This document shows, piece by piece, positions 18,667 to 35,031 of a stretch of DNA of 64,000 nt. This stretch comes from Paragordius varius (Eukaryota; Animalia; Nematomorpha), in the NCBI GenBank assembly GCA_964247055.1, contig OZ176053.1, positions 3,658,001 to 3,722,000 on the forward strand, given 5' to 3'. The position numbers were made by a program, and so were the translations under genes. The number at the start of each line of letters is the position of its first letter. The first letter of the stretch is position 1. The notes beneath the pieces were generated by a model. That model worked only from the letters and a program-made list of their open reading frames with translations, was not told where the DNA came from and did not search any database.

Positions 18667-19986
18667 TTAAAGTTTAAATTTTTCTTGTGCCTTGTCAACA
18701 ACGACCTTGGATATGGCGAGTGAGGATGTGGCCGCCGGTGAAGGGGCATTACGGACATGAAGTGTCCGTTCACCCAATTTCCCTTTTCCGCTATCAAAGA
18801 CGAAATCGTCGACTAAATCACCTTTTTCATCTAAAGCTTGCGCTCTAACCCCAGAAGGACCTGGACTTACATCAGCCACCGAAATTTCCGGTATATAACG
18901 TTGCAAAGCCTTAAGTTTTGCCCTAACAAAAAATGATTCATACATTTCACGCATTCCAGGTGCCATATATTTGAAAGAAAGTTTACGGAACCCGGAAAAC
19001 GTCATGTAATCCCAAATATCTTTGATATTCATGTCGGAGAAGGAATAACCTTCACGGCTAAAAGCTAGCACGGCATTTGGACCAAGCCAGACACTCCCAT
19101 CCATACGAGGTGTAAAATGCACTCCAAGGAAAGGAAACCGCGGATCAGGCACTGGATATATATTACCTTTAACTAAGTGTCGTTTTTCGGGCGATAAAAG
19201 CATGTATTCTCCCCTGAAAGGGACTATTTTGGGAACATTAGAACAACCGGATAATTTTGCGATTTGATCGGAATACAAACCGGCGCAAGTAATAACAAAT
19301 TTTGATTTAAAATGGTTGTTTGCCTGTTGGTTTGCATCATGAGTTATTATCTCAAGAGGGTGAGAATCATTATCGTTATAGGCAAATGATGTTACCTTAT
19401 TGTTCAAAAATATTTTTCCACCAGCTTTTTCAAAATTTTCCCCGTATTTCAAACTAACTCTCCGCCAATCTACTATACCAGTATTTGGTGAATGTAATGC
19501 ACGAAGACCTTTGCAGTAAGGTTCAATTTTGTGAATATCTTTTCCTTCTATAATCGCTAAATCTTTAACATTATTTTTGGTTCCGCGCTCATAAAGATCA
19601 TCCAATAATTTCAATTCTTTTTCAGTTACCGCAACAATTAATTTACCACATTTGTTGTAAGGAATACCATTTTTATCACAAAAATCATAAGCCATGTTCA
19701 TACCTTGAACGCATAACTTTGCCTTTAAAGATCCGGGTTTATAATATACACCAGCATGAATAACACCACTATTGTGCCCGCTTTGATGGGAGGCCAATTC
19801 CTTCTCCTTTTCTACAACTGCAATTTTAAGCGAGGGAAATCTCGTTATCATTTCTTGTGCGGTTGCTAAACCCACAATCCCACCACCAACTATTGTTAAA
19901 TCATAATGATCGTTATTAGTCGCAAACATTCGCAAAGAGAAATGCAAAGCCCCTTTAAGGGGAAAAAATTTGGATACCAACTTCAT
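18667..19986 (-). CDS. L2HGDH: L-2-hydroxyglutarate dehydrogenase, mitochondrial, single exon
   Basis: 439-aa ORF with a presequence-like N-terminus, FAD motif VGGGIVG, HQSGHNSGVIHAGVYYKPGSLKAKLC, PDPRFPFLGVHFTPRMDG and C-terminal HVRNAPSPAATSSLAI. Confidence 0.96.
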   Translation of the reverse strand: MKLVSKFFPLKGALHFSLRMFATNNDHYDLTIVGGGIVGLATAQEMITRFPSLKIAVVEKEKELASHQSGHNSGVIHAGVYYKPGSLKAKLCVQGMNMAYDFCDKNGIPYNKCGKLIVAVTEKELKLLDDLYERGTKNNVKDLAIIEGKDIHKIEPYCKGLRALHSPNTGIVDWRRVSLKYGENFEKAGGKIFLNNKVTSFAYNDNDSHPLEIITHDANQQANNHFKSKFVITCAGLYSDQIAKLSGCSNVPKIVPFRGEYMLLSPEKRHLVKGNIYPVPDPRFPFLGVHFTPRMDGSVWLGPNAVLAFSREGYSFSDMNIKDIWDYMTFSGFRKLSFKYMAPGMREMYESFFVRAKLKALQRYIPEISVADVSPGPSGVRAQALDEKGDLVDDFVFDSGKGKLGERTLHVRNAPSPAATSSLAISKVVVDKAQEKFKL

Positions 19987-23017: not shown

Positions 23018-24758
23018 GCCATAAAGTCTCTTTGCTTATTTTAAAACCAGGTTTTATTGACTTAAATGGTTCTTCTACTGTGTGCAAATAAAATTTTGAT
23101 ATGGTGAGAGTTTCAAATGTTTTATTGCGAAATACCCCAATTATATCCATGCAATTAAGGTGAATTCGTTTAAATAGGAAGCCTTTTTTATAAATTTATC
23201 TTGTATAAAAGCAAATCATTATAGAACATTTTATTTTTACAAGATCTTACCAAAAAACTTTTAATCCATATCGAATATATGCCAGTTTTTATAAATATTA
23301 AAAAACTGATTCATATATATAATTTTTATAATTATAAATTGATTGACAAAAGAGTAGCATGGGTGGAGTACACTTGCACTTTAATTTATCATTTTTATTT
23401 AACATTTATTTAGGCCATGCTATTACATTGACCTATATAAAAATAGATTAAATATTTGTCATTTAGAGTACACAATGAGAAAAACCAGGCCAAGCATTTA
23501 GATAGAGTAAAATAGGCATAAGCAGAACTTTAAATTTTCAAAATATAGAAGGCTAACAATTATGTGCTTCAATCATTTATTTAACGAATAATATTAATTT
23601 GTGGGTCCGTCAAAATTTAAAAAATTTAATTTTTTTGATATGATGACTGGTAACTTGTTAGGACAAAAAACTATTTAGTGCTCCTGTCTATATTGAGAAG
23701 CTGTGCGCAATAAGTTTTGCATGCCTCTCCGGCCATATTTATTATAATGATCATTTAACTTAATAATGACTTATGTAGCACTTATTATAATTATAAATGT
23801 ATCGTAATTTTAAAATTTTGCAAAACTAGGGTTGTCAGTTCCAAACCTGGCTGATGGAGTCCGTCAGCTCTCCACGGTGTGTTCGATGCGTTTGGGCCTT
23901 TGGCGGATTGATGTAACTCTTGAAAGCGCTCATTTCTTGTGAATGATCAAATATATCTAACAATTTTGTGTTAAGAAAGGTACTTTAATAAAATTATATG
24001 TATTAAATTTACCATTAAATTAAAAAATAAAATTTTAGTGGGTGGAAATCTAAAATAATTAATCATGATGGAAAATGCATTGAAATAGCCAATTATATAA
24101 TCAATTTTAAAAGTAGTTACCAACCGTCTATACATATACCCATATATTGCAATGGAAAAATAAATTATATTTTTTACCACCCTAATATAGAGAAAATTAA
24201 AAGTATGGTTGCTATTTTAAAATTAAATATTAAAATGCAAGATTATATAAATTCTTATCGTTTTCATAATAAGATTTGACACACTTTCATATTTTTTCTG
24301 TATTTTTGCAACATAAGAGAAAATTAATATTGTGCACTACTAGTAAAAATTTTAATAATTATAAAAATATTATTTAATTGCTCTAATTCATAAAGTAAAA
24401 ACTTTGTGTTTTACATTGTCTTCCCTACATATGCTACATTAATCCCATAATCTAAGGCGTAAAATTATATTTTAATGCAGGCAGGCATAAATTATAGTTG
24501 GAATTATAATAAAAGTGAAATGTAGAAAATATAATAATATAAGGCGGAAATGGGAGGATGGATACTTTTCAAATGCTGCTAAATTACCTTGCCAACGATT
24601 CATTTATATATGCATAAAAAAATATTTAAAGCTCATAAAATTATTTTTTTTTGGTTTAACAAAATATTTTTAAATAATAGTTTGTTATATAAAGCAATTG
24701 ATTACATCGCGACATAAAAATTTATTTGTTATAGTTAAACATACATTTTGGTAACTAA

Positions 24759-27700
24759 ATGGGAGATACGGAAAAAATTACCGATGAATATGGAGTCGGA
24801 TATGATAATTGTTCACTCGATAGCTATGAGGGAAATGGCTCACCCAATAGAGCCCGTTCAGACTTCAAATCGTTCTGCAAATCTATGCTTATGGGCATAG
24901 TAATGTCGGCATGTTTAGGGTTTTGTTTAATCTTACCCATTTTTTACCTGAGACTCGATCAACTTGAAGCCACACACGACTTCAAAGTCGACAAATTGGT
25001 GGATGAAATACGTAACAAGAAAGACGAAATGTACTATATTAATTCGGGATTGCTTCAATTAAAGGTAACGCCATATTTGTTGTACTAATTATTTTGGTAT
25101 TACTCTTACCTAATTAAATATTTGTTCAACTGATATAATACGATGATTTGGTAAATTCCTTTAGAATGATCTCGATACCATGGCTACCAACAAAGATAAA
25201 CAGGACGAAATCGAAAAAAAGTATATGGATCAAACTTATGTGGAATCCTTGACACGAAAAATCAATAAAGAACATGAAAGAATTATGCAGAGGTCCAAAA
25301 GATCATATCCTGGTGTCTATAGTACGGAAGCCCCATCCGCTCAACAAGGTATTATTACTTTTCATATTTACATCTAGAGTACTATTAACTTTTTGATTTA
25401 CACTAATATGCTATACCCTACTATTGTAATATTTGGTCAAAAAAATAAATATTTTCTGTGCCTAGATTGCTGTATTCAAGGCAGTCCTGGACCAAAAGGT
25501 CCCAAAGGTCGAGACGGACATCCCGGTCCTCCGGGAAGAATCGGTCCACCAGGGAGAGATGGAGACCCTGGAGATCCAGGAAACGATGGGGAAAACGGAC
25601 AAAACGGAGAACCGGTAGAATATTTGTAAATAAACTGAGGAAGGGTTTAGTGAATTTTAAGTTTTATGTAGTAGTATGAAAGAGCTCTTTTTATTGTATC
25701 CAACAATGAAATACAAAATTCAGTTATCAATTCATTTTAATATATGTTACGAAACACCCTTTTCCTTATTTAAATAGAATGGCCAAACATTTATTTAATT
25801 TTTTGGATAGGGTGACCCTGGAAACCCTGGTCCTAATGGACAACCAGGTCGCCCAGGCAGGGATGGACAGCCTGGATTTCCTGGCAGAGATGGCTCTCCA
25901 GGCCCGGACGGAAAACCCGGTCTTGATGGAGATGATGTAATTTGTGTTTTCATCCGCACGTTTTCTTAAAATTGGATGACAAATATTCAATATGATACTG
26001 TTTTTAAATTAAAAAGTTCTATAAAAAAATAATTTTCTTTAACTAATTATTTTCGCGTCATTTTAAGGCAAATGCAATTTCATTATAAATTTATTATAAA
26101 TAGGGACCACCAGGTATAGATGGTGCCCCCGGGAAGGATGGTGAAAAGGGTGAGCCTGGAACCCCGGGCCGTGATGGCAATGACGGTTTACCTGGCATTG
26201 ATGGAAGACCTGGAAGTCCTGGATTGCCAGTAATCTTGAAAAAAATATATTTAAAATTCAATTAAAACACTGAGCGGTATGCGGTATTACAGCATTGCGT
26301 TTTATAAATTAATATTCTAAGGATTTTTCATTTAATCTAAAAGTTTCTTTAAATTTAAGGGTGATCCCGGAGAAGCTGGAAGAGATGGCGTTCCTGGTCC
26401 CCCAGGAGATGATGGCTCCCCAGGTGTCGATGGGGCTCCTGGGAGCCCTGGTCCCGATGGAAAACCTGGTCAGGATGCAACTTCCCCGGTAATATTTTTA
26501 AATTGATTTGTCAGCTGAGAAATATTGATACTATTAGGCAAACATTTTAGCCATAGCGAAGCTATTTATAATTTAAACTTGATTCCACTTATGCTCTATA
26601 TGCATACTATTGATATGAAATTGCATATTGTATATTGTGCTAAAGGGACCGCCAGGAGATCCTGGATTCGCTGGAAAAGATGGAAGACCAGGATCCCCCG
26701 GAGCAGATGGTCGACCTGGACCAGATGGTTTGCCGGGATCTGACGGATTGCCAGGAGAACCAGGGGACGCGGTAAATTTGGATATACCTATTTTTTTTAA
26801 AAAAATATTAGCAAAATTATATTTGATATATTTACAGTTACAGAAAAAGTTCATAACTAAATGGCAAATATATTCTTAAAAATAATAGGGGAAAATATAT
26901 TTAATACATATATAATTATGTTTGAAATTATACCGAGAAGAAAGGTAAAAGATATATATTTTCTTAAAAAAGACAACAAAAATATTTAACCTTGATTTTT
27001 TCAAAAACTCATCCTTTTGTATATCAAACTCAATATATTTAAAAATTGTAAGTATACAGCTGGACTAATAAACATTAAGGTTTGTTATCTTTTAAAAAAT
27101 ATTTGTCGTTTAGTTTTATCGTTTTACTATATTTCAATTTTTACTGTAAATATGAATGTTTTATTTTAGGGAGATCCAGGAGAACCAGGGGAAGATGCTG
27201 ATCATGGCAGACTTGGAGTTCATGGAGAAAAGGGTAAAGATGGACGACCCGGGAACCCTGGGCAAGATGGTAACCCTGGAAGAGATGGAATACCGGTAAG
27301 TCAGTAAACGTATACTAATAATTATTGTCAAAGCTTTTCTCCTTTCGCAGATGCTCTATTGATTAGGCTAATTAAATATTTCCTTTCAAGTTGGTAATGC
27401 TACTTATGCATTCTAGTATATGTTGTTTTGGTCAATGTTTTATTATATGCCTAAATTTACATGTTTTATTAAATTCAAAAAAAAATTAGTAATAGGTAGG
27501 CAATCAGACACCCTATTGTTTAATCTTATAAAACTACGAATATTGTGTTGACAAATATTGAATAATAAAATAAAAACTTATCTTCTCACACTATATTATT
27601 ATGTTTTATCAGGGAAGACCCGGAGAACCTGGTAGAGATGGTAAAGACGGATCTCCCGGAGATCCAGGACGTGATGGATTTGATGGTTTACCCGGACGCC

Positions 27701-29872
27701 CTGGTAGAGATGGCAGACCTGGAAACGATGGGCCAAAAGTATGAAACATTTTAAATCTGATTAGTTCATTTCATTTATAATGTTTAGATATGATAAAAGC
27801 AATTTCCTCATGCTAAAATTAAACTATTTGTTTAGGGTCCGCCTGGGTCCCCAGGAATTGATGGTACACCTGGTAAACCAGGTATTGACGGGAAAGATGG
27901 TGTGGCTGGTATTCCTGGGACCCCTGGAAAAGATGGACAACCAAATTTTACGCCTGGACCACCGGTATGTTCATTAAAAATAAGCTTTATACCAAAATAT
28001 TCCAACTTACATATATCATGTTTTATTTTTTACAAAGTTTATATCTGATATTACAAATATATAAATTTGAAAAATCCCATATAGGGTATTCAAGGCCAGC
28101 CCGGATTCCCAGGTCTTCCGGGAGAAGATGGGCGGCCAGGAGAACTAGGAGAGGCTGGAGACGCGGGCGAAAAAGGATTTTCTGGGCCACCTGGCATCGA
28201 TGGAGCCCCCGGATCACCTGGTCAGGACGGTGAGCCTGGAAACCGAGGTCCAACTGGTGTCAAAGGTCACCCAGGGCGATCTGGAGAAGATGGTATATAA
28301 TTTTTTTTTCGATATCATTAACGTTTTTTTTATTACCAAATTTTTTTTTGAAAATATATATAAACTGACATTTATAACTAATATCGAATATCAGGGAGCT
28401 TTACACCTTATTTTATTACCACAAATATCGGCTATTTTATTTACCATAAACGTGTGCTATAGAAAATAAGTTTAAAACTGGTGGTTAATTTACATTTTAT
28501 TTTGTTTTAGGACCACCAGGGCAACAAGGTCCACAAGGACATCAAGGTCCGCAAGGGCCCGAAGGTGAACAAGGTGCCTCTGGACCTCCAGGGAATCCTG
28601 GTGAGCCTGGAAAGCCTGGTAATGCCGGTGTCTGTCAAGAGATAACTTGCCAAGGTATTTACAGCAAATTTTCTGAAATTAATTAACAATCATAGTCAAA
28701 GTTTTAATTAAATTCTACTAGTCTTTATTCGGATTAGGGTTGAAGCGGAACCATTTTTTTAAAAGAAAACCGCATTTTCAAACGCTTCCAAAATATGTTT
28801 GTTTCTAATTTTCATACAAATTAATCTTATATTTTGATAATAATTTTTAATTTATATGAATATTAATATTCAAAGAAAAAAACATAAAATAATTTGCATT
28901 TTTGCAGTGTATTTAAATAAGGTTATGTGTTAATATAATAATGGGAAAACTAGAACAATTTTACCAAACATTGGATCCCAAAAAAAGTTTGGTTTTTATA
29001 AAGAATTTAGTAGAACCGGAACCATACCAAAGACAAAATTACAATTTTGGTCTCATTCCTTGGTTTACAATGGACATCTTGTAAAAATATTTGAAAAATA
29101 GGATTGTATACTAGCCTTTGTATTTATCTCATTAGTTATGGTAACAAAATTTCGGCACATTTTTGTATATATTCGGTTAAATGTCTTTGACAAAATTTAA
29201 TATATGTACTCTGAAAAAGAATCCTCGGATTTTATTTTCGAGTGTTTCTGAATTTACATTTTTTCAATTTATATTTATATGGTCTAATAAATAACAGCTC
29301 AAGCCGTAACAAACGAATGTAGTGGTATCGTTTTCACTCGATGGGGACAAACAACTTGTCCATCAAATGCCATTATTGTGTACTCGGGTAAGGTTGTTGG
29401 TGGAAGTAACAAAGATACTGGAGGCGGTTTTAATTACTTATGTCTCCCCAATCGTATTCAGGGCAATAACTTTGGTATAACCGGTCGAACCGTTTCCAAA
29501 ATCTATGGTGCTCAATTCCATTTCTATCCTCAGGGCGGTCCGTTTGCCAGTACGGCTGCAGATTTACATTTGGCGGCTTGTTCGGTGTGTTTAAGGCGTG
29601 GCCATTGTGTTTTCGTTATGTTAGCAGCTTTGACCCAATGTCCCCCGGGTTGGTTGGAGGAATACAAGGGCTACCTCATGTCCATAGACAATGAAAAGGC
29701 CCGAGCCGAATATATTTGTGTGGATGAAACTCCTGAAGGATTTGACATTGGAGGTGAACAACACTACCATGGCGCATCAGGATTGTGGCCAGTTGAATCC
29801 AAGTGTGGAATTCTCCCTTGCAATACTTACTATGATGGTCGTGAACTTCCTTGCATAGTTTGCAGTCGTTAA
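24759..29872 (+). CDS. Type II membrane / cuticle-type collagen with about 150 Gly-X-Y triplets and a C-terminal short-chain collagen C4 (spongin/NC1-related) domain; 13 exons
   Basis: Exons: 24759-25064, 25165-25348, 25466-25614, 25811-25936, 26104-26229, 26360-26488, 26646-26771, 27170-27295, 27613-27738, 27836-27964, 28085-28292, 28511-28654, 29298-29872. Features in order: TM helix [21 protein letters not shown], furin site RSKR, DCCIQG-Gly-[10 protein letters not shown], then [10 protein letters not shown]...YSGKVVGG...[10 protein letters not shown]...[19 protein letters not shown]. Confidence 0.93.
28736..29030. mobile_element. Transposon remnant with GAACC/AAACCG subterminal motifs, in the last collagen intron
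   Basis: Starts TAGGGTTGAAGCGGAACC. Related GGTTCC-rich stretches occur at about 53665-53730 (opposite orientation) and 57330-57480. Confidence 0.35.
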
Positions 29873-30424
29873 TCCGTCAATCTTTAACATTACTATTTTT
29901 TAAATAAACTATAAAGCCAAACTTAGTTTTAATTTTTGCATTTCATCATTGTTTTGAGATTGCATAATTGCAACAATATTTTATATTTTTAAAATAGAAA
30001 ATAAATGATTTAATTTTTATCGTATATAAGATGACTAACTATTTATTTTGTGGTGCTTATCGAATGCATTAGCAATGCGATTTATATTTTTTTATTGGAC
30101 ATCAAACAAATTTAGGCTTTAAGACGACTCTAACATTCCAAATTTAACGTTAGCACATAAAAAATTAATTAAACAATAAAGCAACGCTAGTTTTAGTATT
30201 ATTAATAAATAAGGTGCTGGATTTAGGTCAAAAATATAGCGTATCTAATGTTCCTATTAGTGGAGTGAATCGCAAGGGCTTTCGGAATATAAAAAAATTG
30301 GATTTCATTTCCATATAAGAAAATAAACTCCAAAAACTGATTTTAAGCGCCTAGTTATATTTAAAGATTTTTTATTTTAAAATTTTTATTCATAAAAATT
30401 GCTAATTATGCAAATAGTTTATAG

Positions 30425-33606: not shown

Positions 33607-35031
33607 ATGAATTTCTTTGAAATTTATATTCTGCCAATTTTCATATTCTTAGGAATTTTGGGCAACTTATGTTATTTCATATGTACGTTAAAAATTCGGA
33701 AAAGACCTCACTTTTACATTTACATATATTGTATCATGATTGCGGATATGTTATCCATATTTCATCTAATATGTTGGCCCCTAACCTTTTTTCGCGTAGG
33801 GAACCGAGTTATGCATTACAAATTTTATCTCATTTACATTGGCAAAATACAACCGTGGTTTATGGAACTGAGTGCAGCTTCTGTCAATTGGACCACTGCA
33901 GTGCTGAGCGTGGATCGTTGGTTTGCCATAAGCAAACCCCATCTGTATCAACAATGGTACAGAAAAGATAAGATTGTTAAAATATGTATCGGGATTGTGG
34001 TTGTCAACATGTTGATTGCCATTCCATATTCACAAATAAGAGAGCTTGATTCCTCCTCCATCACTAACGATTTCGGGGCAAAAGAAATGAAGGCGCGGAG
34101 ATTCCTAGATTTTATCACCCAAAAAGATTTGATACATAATAGTGTGAGTAAATCTACGCCTTTAGTTTACCCGGTATGGCCAACTGTTACACACCCAAGC
34201 GTTGGGACTAAAACAAAATTAGAAACATTAGTTAGCCACTCAAAGGAATTGGAGATAATTTTAGCCATTGAAGAATTAGATAAATTTAGCAAGTACTATG
34301 ATACCATCATAGTTACTATTAATTACTTGATTCCCATCTTAATGTGTATCGTCTGTAATATACTTATTGTTTACCCACCTATAAATGACAAATTATTTAA
34401 TATGTTTGAAACGATTCAATCAAAACAGCCCAATAAGATTATGGACACTCAAACAACTCCGGCGATTGCTGTAACAAAATCATCCAGGTTATGTCCCTTG
34501 ATGAAATTTAATTTGGGTGCAAAACAATTTATGCAAAAGCTTAACCAAAAAATTAGTTGTACCAATGATTGTGAAATATTTTTTTGTGAAATGTGTCAAA
34601 TGCCAACTACGAACCCACCAACAGCCCATATAAATCAATGTAATAATGATTCAAATTTGACCATAAATGCAATGAGTCAAAATAACAAATGTTTTAATGA
34701 AAAAAATGCGTTAACTAGCGTTGGATCCGCGCGATACAGGAGTCGAATGATTAAGCGCCGAATAAAAAGTTTAATAACTGCTCAAAGCATTCACATTTTT
34801 CTAACCAATATGCCTTTCATTATATTCGTTTACTTTACTGGATATTTTTACTGCTCTGACGCCCGTTCTAAATACTGGTTAGCTCAGCTCGTGGTCCATC
34901 ATTTGAAACACATGAATCCCTTGCTTGGTGTTTATGTTAACTTTTTATTTGATAAAAATGTGAGATTTATATTAAATCATATTAGGTTTCATCGTATAAT
35001 ACCACAACATCATACTTGTGAAACGGCATAA
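33607..35031 (+). CDS. Class A (rhodopsin-like) GPCR, peptide-receptor-like, single exon
   Basis: 474-aa ORF with 7 hydrophobic segments: LGILGN (TM1), IADML (TM2), LSVDRWFAISKP (TM3), LIPILM (TM5), TNMPF (TM6), MNPLLGVY (TM7). ECL2 and ICL3 are long. Confidence 0.88.
   Translation: MNFFEIYILPIFIFLGILGNLCYFICTLKIRKRPHFYIYIYCIMIADMLSIFHLICWPLTFFRVGNRVMHYKFYLIYIGKIQPWFMELSAASVNWTTAVLSVDRWFAISKPHLYQQWYRKDKIVKICIGIVVVNMLIAIPYSQIRELDSSSITNDFGAKEMKARRFLDFITQKDLIHNSVSKSTPLVYPVWPTVTHPSVGTKTKLETLVSHSKELEIILAIEELDKFSKYYDTIIVTINYLIPILMCIVCNILIVYPPINDKLFNMFETIQSKQPNKIMDTQTTPAIAVTKSSRLCPLMKFNLGAKQFMQKLNQKISCTNDCEIFFCEMCQMPTTNPPTAHINQCNNDSNLTINAMSQNNKCFNEKNALTSVGSARYRSRMIKRRIKSLITAQSIHIFLTNMPFIIFVYFTGYFYCSDARSKYWLAQLVVHHLKHMNPLLGVYVNFLFDKNVRFILNHIRFHRIIPQHHTCETA

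Follow-up and report, generated by a model that had tools for sequence, protein, structure and literature searches.

How should one explain a horsehair-worm collagen that begins much as the nematode cuticle collagens do and ends in a domain of the spongin type? The question is raised by a gene on the forward strand, at positions 24759-29872 of a 64,000-nucleotide stretch of the Paragordius varius genome (Nematomorpha; assembly GCA_964247055.1, contig OZ176053.1, positions 3,658,001 to 3,722,000), which as a whole we call the window. An earlier note, made from the letters alone, took the gene for a nematode-type N-terminus joined to a foreign end domain, and hence for a possible link between the spongin-like and the cuticle collagens; it also said that the family of the end domain had been reported missing from model ecdysozoans. 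The latter statement is correct, the spongin-type collagens being stated in the literature to be absent from, or lost in, this group (PMC5395295). The former view is not supported. We believe, with a probability of roughly 0.8, that the locus is a functional horsehair-worm gene whose product, a member of the spongin short-chain-collagen-related family, is a collagen anchored in the membrane in type II orientation and releasable by a protease. Its architecture would have been inherited from an early animal ancestor and then kept and lengthened in the horsehair worms; so understood, it is neither a chimera nor a demonstrated intermediate.

Three-frame translation of positions 24700-29950 yields an 817-aa collagen encoded by 13 exons, with a coding sequence of 2454 nt and a single terminal stop. 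The exon boundaries were set by eye on the sequence and then verified by script; every intron has the form GT...AG and the exon phases are compatible throughout. The exons are as follows.

24759..25064, + strand: exon 1, 306 nt, ending in phase 0; start codon, 42-aa cytosolic tail, predicted anchor helix (24885-24950) and start of the spacer
25165..25348, + strand: exon 2, 184 nt; remainder of the Pro/Gly-poor spacer, RSKR (25291-25302) and a Tyr-containing telopeptide
25466..25614, + strand: exon 3, 149 nt; cysteine pair (25468-25473); the triple helix begins at 25480
25811..27964, + strand: exons 4-10, seven phase-0 collagen exons of 126, 126, 129, 126, 126, 126 and 129 nt
25811-25936, 26104-26229, 26360-26488 and 26646-26771, + strand: exons 4-7, the first codon of each encoding Gly
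27170-27295, 27613-27738 and 27836-27964, + strand: exons 8-10, the first codon of each again encoding Gly
28085..28292, + strand: exon 11, 208 nt; collagen (Pfam Collagen, E 2.6e-20)
28511..28654, + strand: exon 12, 144 nt, ending in phase 1; end of the helix (to 28626) and C-x4-C cap CQEITC (28633-28650)
29298..29872, + strand: exon 13, 575 nt including the stop; short linker and spongin-type C4/NC1-like domain (29327-29869)

The ATG at 24759 is immediately preceded by a stop codon. Exon 1 ends at the donor AAG/GTAACG, exon 2 lies between the acceptor TTTAG and the donor AAG/GTATTA, the sequence D-C-C-I-Q-G at the start of exon 3 is formed across a phase-1 junction, and exon 13 follows the acceptor AACAG in phase 1, the phase in which exon 12 ends. 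All of the Pfam, fold and library searches reported here were run on individual exons or on relatives; in them the helix exons match Pfam Collagen with E values of 1e-8 to 1e-20 (1.8e-9 for exon 3). A recent duplication among the seven 126-nt exons is unsupported, their in-register similarity being 0.31 as against 0.23 ± 0.07 in shifted controls. The window holds a single copy of the gene.

The predicted protein contains, from end to end of this 13-exon model, every element that the earlier note had listed. A cytosolic tail (residues 1-42) leads into a hydrophobic helix of 22 aa (residues 43-64; mean Kyte-Doolittle value 2.42) which ends CLILPIFY(L), and this in turn into a spacer of 80 aa (residues 65-144). 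The spacer, called coiled-coil-like in the earlier note, has just one Pro/Gly in 77 residues and is 42% charged; its heptad signal is weak, being equaled by 58 of 1000 shuffled sequences. The furin-type site RSKR (residues 145-148), followed by SY, is separated by a 16-residue Tyr-containing stretch from a pair of cysteines (C165 and C166, in DCCIQG) that lies directly N-terminal to the helix. The helix itself comprises 147 Gly-X-Y triplets, close to the 150 or so first estimated, divided into four blocks by three interruptions of 1-4 residues; its Y position is Pro in 50% and Asp in 27% of the triplets. At its end stands a C-x4-C cap (GVCQEITC; C620 and C625), and beyond this a C-terminal domain of ~180-190 aa with 12 cysteines, which is encoded by the last exon alone.

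The kinship of the protein is most readily established from this end domain. A phmmer search with exon 13 against a library of 1.84 billion proteins returned 2259 representatives at E <= 1e-3, 1208 of which were at E <= 1e-10. Proteins named short-chain collagen C4 or C4-like were matched at E ~1e-31 to 1e-33 with 40-44% identity, and such matches came from Nematostella, Acropora, Lingula, Octopus, Owenia, and Branchiostoma. Source names were looked up for 30 hits, and a word search named ~110 more; among the names so obtained the designation "short-chain collagen C4(-like)" was carried by those from Branchiostoma, Octopus, Tegillarca, Lingula, Acropora, Actinia, Montipora, and Nematostella, and those from Owenia, Amphiura, Antedon, and Saccoglossus had no protein name. 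An alignment of 45 sequences has eight invariant and two near-invariant cysteines, all of them present in the window protein, which has two others at domain positions 7 and 103. The published cysteine framework of the family consists of seven residues common to collagen IV and three that are spongin-specific (PMC5395295); our ten aligned columns were compared with it as a set.

The predicted fold leads in the same direction. An AlphaFold2 model of the end domain, built from the 45-sequence alignment, has a mean predicted local distance difference test score (pLDDT) of 90.5 and a predicted template-modeling score (pTM) of 0.86. It superimposes on the Atlas models of short-chain collagen C4-like clusters from cnidarians and molluscs with template-modeling (TM) scores of 0.85-0.91 at ~2 Å, and on that of a collagen IV cluster with a TM score of 0.60. 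In a Foldseek comparison with the PDB the 42 top matches were all collagen IV NC1 domains (best E 6.6e-6), after which there was a sharp drop, and VIA-align against collagen IV NC1 gave a Z score of 8.4 with a root-mean-square deviation of 4.3 Å over 148 residues. A search of the solved NC1 domains by sequence only was marginal (E 0.03-0.4), with the NC1 chains first in rank. PF01413 (Pfam C4) had no match at E <= 1 in the window exons; the spongin end domain is likewise without a Pfam model in the sponge genome paper (PMC12749355).

With the spongin family the protein thus shares an end domain of ~185 aa, the same ten cysteines, the motif RWG.T.CP, a fold at a TM score of ~0.9, and the entry of the helix into the domain after just a short Cys-capped linker; it differs from these relatives in its extra C-x4-C cap and its two extra cysteines. 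With the collagen IV NC1 domain it has in common the class of fold, and a short segment of it aligns with FTRHSQTT..CP of alpha3(IV), but it lacks the HSQ motif and is ~40 residues shorter. Collagen IV has, moreover, a helix about three times as long and a 7S region, which the window protein lacks; collagen IV proper was rejected as an identification, there being neither a PF01413 match nor a 7S region. As judged from sequence similarity the end domain can be placed firmly in the spongin short-chain collagen-related family, as the earlier note proposed, and its modeled relation to collagen IV is at the level of the fold only, as has already been published.

If the end of the protein is of the spongin type, is the remainder a nematode addition? 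The layouts of the relatives argue otherwise. In about 40 proteins of amphioxus a cytosolic tail of 20-30 residues is followed by a hydrophobic helix, a long coiled coil, an R-x-K/R-R motif and one or two cysteines, after which come a GRDG-rich helix of 10-56 triplets and a C4-like domain. The annelid Owenia (P0040) has the same order of domains, and the R-x-K/R-R of the relatives occupies the matching place in the layout. In corals a cleavable-looking signal peptide stands in place of the anchor and is followed by RERR, a short coiled coil, the helix and C4, and in Tegillarca and Nymphon there are an anchor, a coiled coil, a furin site and C4, without a helix. Because the same layout stands in amphioxus and in an annelid, it is better regarded as an old design than as a hybrid, and the notion of a nematode-type signature joined to a foreign domain is not sustained. 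The predicted features imply that there is within the spongin family a putatively membrane-anchored, furin-releasable subgroup, and that the architecture is not specific to nematodes; no description of such a subgroup was found in the searchable literature. In the sea spider Nymphon striatum one annotated protein (KAG1684939.1; P0004) consists of two near-identical units, each with an anchor, a coiled coil, an NRAKRQ site and a C4-like domain; no helix is present, and the annotation has probably fused two tandem genes. Word-index searches with the Gordionus protein described below (P0084) and with this Nymphon protein gave 2 and 6 proteins respectively, results that do not bear on other Ecdysozoa.

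What does set the horsehair-worm gene apart is the extent of its helix, which the earlier note rightly regarded as much longer than usual. A short collagenous domain is among the characters of the spongin family, and here the window protein departs from it, with 147 triplets versus 17-56 in the amphioxus members inspected and 15-26 in the representatives counted from Acropora, Owenia, Lingula, and Amphiura. The departure is one of length and not of kind. The only other inspected hit that combines a long helix with a C4-like domain is a paralog from another horsehair worm, Gordionus sp. (CAK9299716.1; P0084; 1185 aa), which has an anchor at about residue 73, 143 triplets, and the C4-like domain. 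Its helix is encoded by consecutive exons of 126-138 nt, with a length of exactly 126 nt in five of the seven, and then by exons of ~228 and ~138 nt, and the G+C content of its locus is 27%, low as in the window gene. A maximum likelihood tree of the domain pairs the window and Gordionus sequences (89/52) and places them beside Nymphon (92/87), a grouping which we consider suggestive only. The change proper to the lineage would then be that the helix has grown to 147 triplets in exon modules of 14 triplets (126 nt). The C4-like domain of the Gordionus protein is itself broken by basic low-complexity stretches (residues ~960-1015 and ~1098-1125; L001:38299-39785), so that its hidden Markov model match falls into three pieces; these stretches may be introns that the annotation has left unspliced.

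There is strong evidence that the gene is maintained by selection. Compared with the DNA of other individuals, 15 of the 16 best-supported exonic differences are synonymous, the remaining one being E>D, and they are spread over exons 1, 2, 3, 7, 9, 11, 12, and 13. In exon 1 six of the seven differences are synonymous, and in exon 12 both differences from one DNA run; the sole listed difference in exon 13 is synonymous as well. The predominance of synonymous changes therefore indicates purifying selection on the modeled reading frame, the last exon not excepted. One DNA run carries two haplotypes at approximately equal depth, with clustered intron substitutions and small indels (26557-26640, 25678-25683, 27603-27609), which points to high heterozygosity at the collagen locus.

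Several observations must nonetheless be set against the proposed identification. The search of sequencing runs found the locus in five, all of DNA, with contigs that span introns and exons, and in no RNA run, and transcript support is consequently absent; of two runs guessed to be RNA, one gave no matches and the other just cross-matches of 18-34 nt from other collagen transcripts. The anchor, the coiled coil and the cleavage site are predictions. The helix, three to eight times longer than those of the relatives, exceeds what the name "short-chain" would allow, and the ecdysozoan grouping in the tree unites long branches. Finally, a phmmer search with the spliced N-terminal 168 aa against ~270 fetched relatives, the Gordionus protein included, found none at E <= 10; common descent of the anchor module is therefore deduced from its layout alone. 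A separate observation concerns the second of the runs guessed to be RNA, which is from the same species: it contains a 2525-nt contig at a depth of 684 whose match to the helix exons is confined to 18-34 nt (window 27867-27943), and hence another collagen must be very highly expressed in that sample.

The alternative with the most to commend it, though we regard it as improbable, is that the gene is an evolutionary intermediate, its N-terminal half being homologous to Col_cuticle_N and the nematode cuticle collagens being descendants that have lost C4. Nematomorpha is the sister phylum of Nematoda, and the two kinds of protein resemble each other in a general way: each has a type II anchor (or signal) and a coiled-coil-like spacer, then a dibasic, furin-type site ahead of the helix, with Cys knots on either side of the latter, all of which probably work alike. 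About two thirds of the cuticle collagens of Caenorhabditis elegans show such features (PMC10538796). But these are not diagnostic of cuticle collagens, because an anchor and a furin site also occur in the membrane-associated collagens whose triple helix is interrupted (MACITs), as well as in spongin-family members from outside the Ecdysozoa. A C-x4-C knot like that of the window protein's cap is carried by the fibril-associated FACIT collagens too. The layout, being common to amphioxus and an annelid, is not specific to the nematoids.

The sequence of the N-terminus does not help this alternative. The earlier note saw in it the Col_cuticle_N domain (PF01484), for which there was no match at E <= 1 in window exons 1-3 and none in the Gordionus protein, either at full length or cut to its first 420 residues. 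In separate scans of 37 N-termini from the family, PF01484 was not among the recurring families, which were generic coiled-coil ones (tropomyosin, ATG16, Rab11-FIP3, etc.); its sole trace, of 13.1 bits against a cut-off of 23.5, fell on the hydrophobic helix of Nymphon and is read as an effect of composition. The N-termini of the family have, however, diverged beyond recognition even between paralogs, and the missing match is therefore weak evidence against a distant nematode kinship. The differences are also considerable: the window protein has a globular end domain of 190 aa and a length of 817 aa versus ~300 aa in the cuticle collagens, and its gene has many exons with 126-nt modules. The helices of nematode cuticle collagens are about one third the length of its own. 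The earlier note had itself said that its idea would be refuted if Col_cuticle_N similarity were lacking and the same order of anchor, collagen and C4 were already common in lophotrochozoans or cnidarians, and this is in the main what was found, the order recurring in amphioxus and an annelid.

Less probable still is a derivation from the MACITs (XIII, XXIII, and XXV, with COL-99 of C. elegans) by secondary gain of a C4-like domain. The likeness by layout is real enough, since these collagens too are type II in orientation and have a helical region close to the membrane, shedding at a dibasic, furin-type site and an interrupted helix. But there is no sequence evidence for a link, the full architecture occurs with short helices across the spongin family, and the interruptions in the window protein are merely of 1-4 residues and not the long non-collagenous (NC) domains of the MACITs, which in turn do not have its NC1(IV)-like end domain.

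We give equally little credence to an artefact of the gene model, in which exon 13 would be a separate gene or a dead fragment downstream of a collagen that ended at exon 12. The last intron, of 643 nt, is the longest of the gene and no RNA read crosses it. Against this, exon 12 runs without a stop to a good donor in phase 1, and exon 13 starts at an AG in the same phase; every inspected relative that bears a helix has the C4 domain after it, directly or by way of a short linker; and the one difference listed for exon 13 is synonymous. Exon 13 has an in-frame stop 7 nt upstream and no in-frame ATG ahead of the start of the domain, and is therefore not an independent gene; a stand-alone C4 gene was accordingly rejected, for want of a start codon, and so was contamination, the introns being AT-rich like the remaining window and the locus being present in DNA runs from two studies.

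Returning to the membrane-anchored spongin-type collagen that we prefer, a plausible course for its assembly can be proposed by analogy with the transmembrane cuticle collagens of C. elegans and the MACITs. For both of these furin-dependent release is documented, and BLI-4 is needed for secretion (PMC10538796). The chain would be inserted into the membrane of the endoplasmic reticulum with its N-terminus in the cytosol. Three chains would then associate through the helical spacer next to the membrane, through the NC1-like domain at the C-terminus, or through both, allowing the helix of ~450 residues to fold, and the disulfide knots at its two ends (CC and C-x4-C) would lock the trimer. A furin-type convertase might next cleave after RSKR148 and free the ectodomain into the matrix, where the NC1-like domain could drive end-to-end or lateral association.

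Some further occurrences of the end domain, and the surroundings of the gene, deserve brief mention. The choanoflagellate Choanoeca perplexa (P0001; 3949 aa) has nine full tandem C4-like copies, a 956-aa transcript of Ancoracysta twista (P0014) has three, P0269 has nine with Cys-rich spacers, and P0002 likewise has a tandem C4-like array, all without Gly-X-Y repeats; unless the protist transcriptomes are contaminated, the spongin-type C4-like domain would thus appear to occur outside animals, or at least without collagen. In the hemichordate Saccoglossus kowalevskii (XP_077866475.1; P0098) a kringle-like Cys-rich segment, recognized by eye, is apparently joined to a C4-like domain. Within the window the collagen gene has no head-to-head collagen partner, and its neighbors are unrelated.

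18667-19986, - strand: intronless gene for a 439-aa FAD-dependent oxidoreductase (PF01266, E 1e-56)
33607-35031, + strand: intronless gene for a 474-aa receptor of the rhodopsin family (PF00001, E 2e-7)

The novelty of the gene is modest: it belongs to a known family, though in a phylum where this was not expected, and its unusually long helix is built of 126-nt exons. The published statement of its loss in the Ecdysozoa rests on the fly and C. elegans, and our search of the literature found no paper that links the spongin family to the Ecdysozoa or to hairworms. The window gene, its Gordionus paralog and the sea-spider relative together show that at least two ecdysozoan lineages have kept the family. 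The collagen fibers of the nematomorph cuticle have been little studied, and the long-helix genes of the horsehair worms are obvious candidates for them. One may go further and speculate, with the odds clearly against it, that long-helix, furin-released collagens of the spongin type build the giant crossed cuticle fibers of these worms, that the collagen cuticle of the nematoids began with membrane-anchored spongin-type collagens, and that the cuticle collagens of nematodes are their shortened descendants, from which C4 has been lost. For the origin of the nematode cuticle collagens the horsehair-worm genes also offer a concrete, testable starting point.

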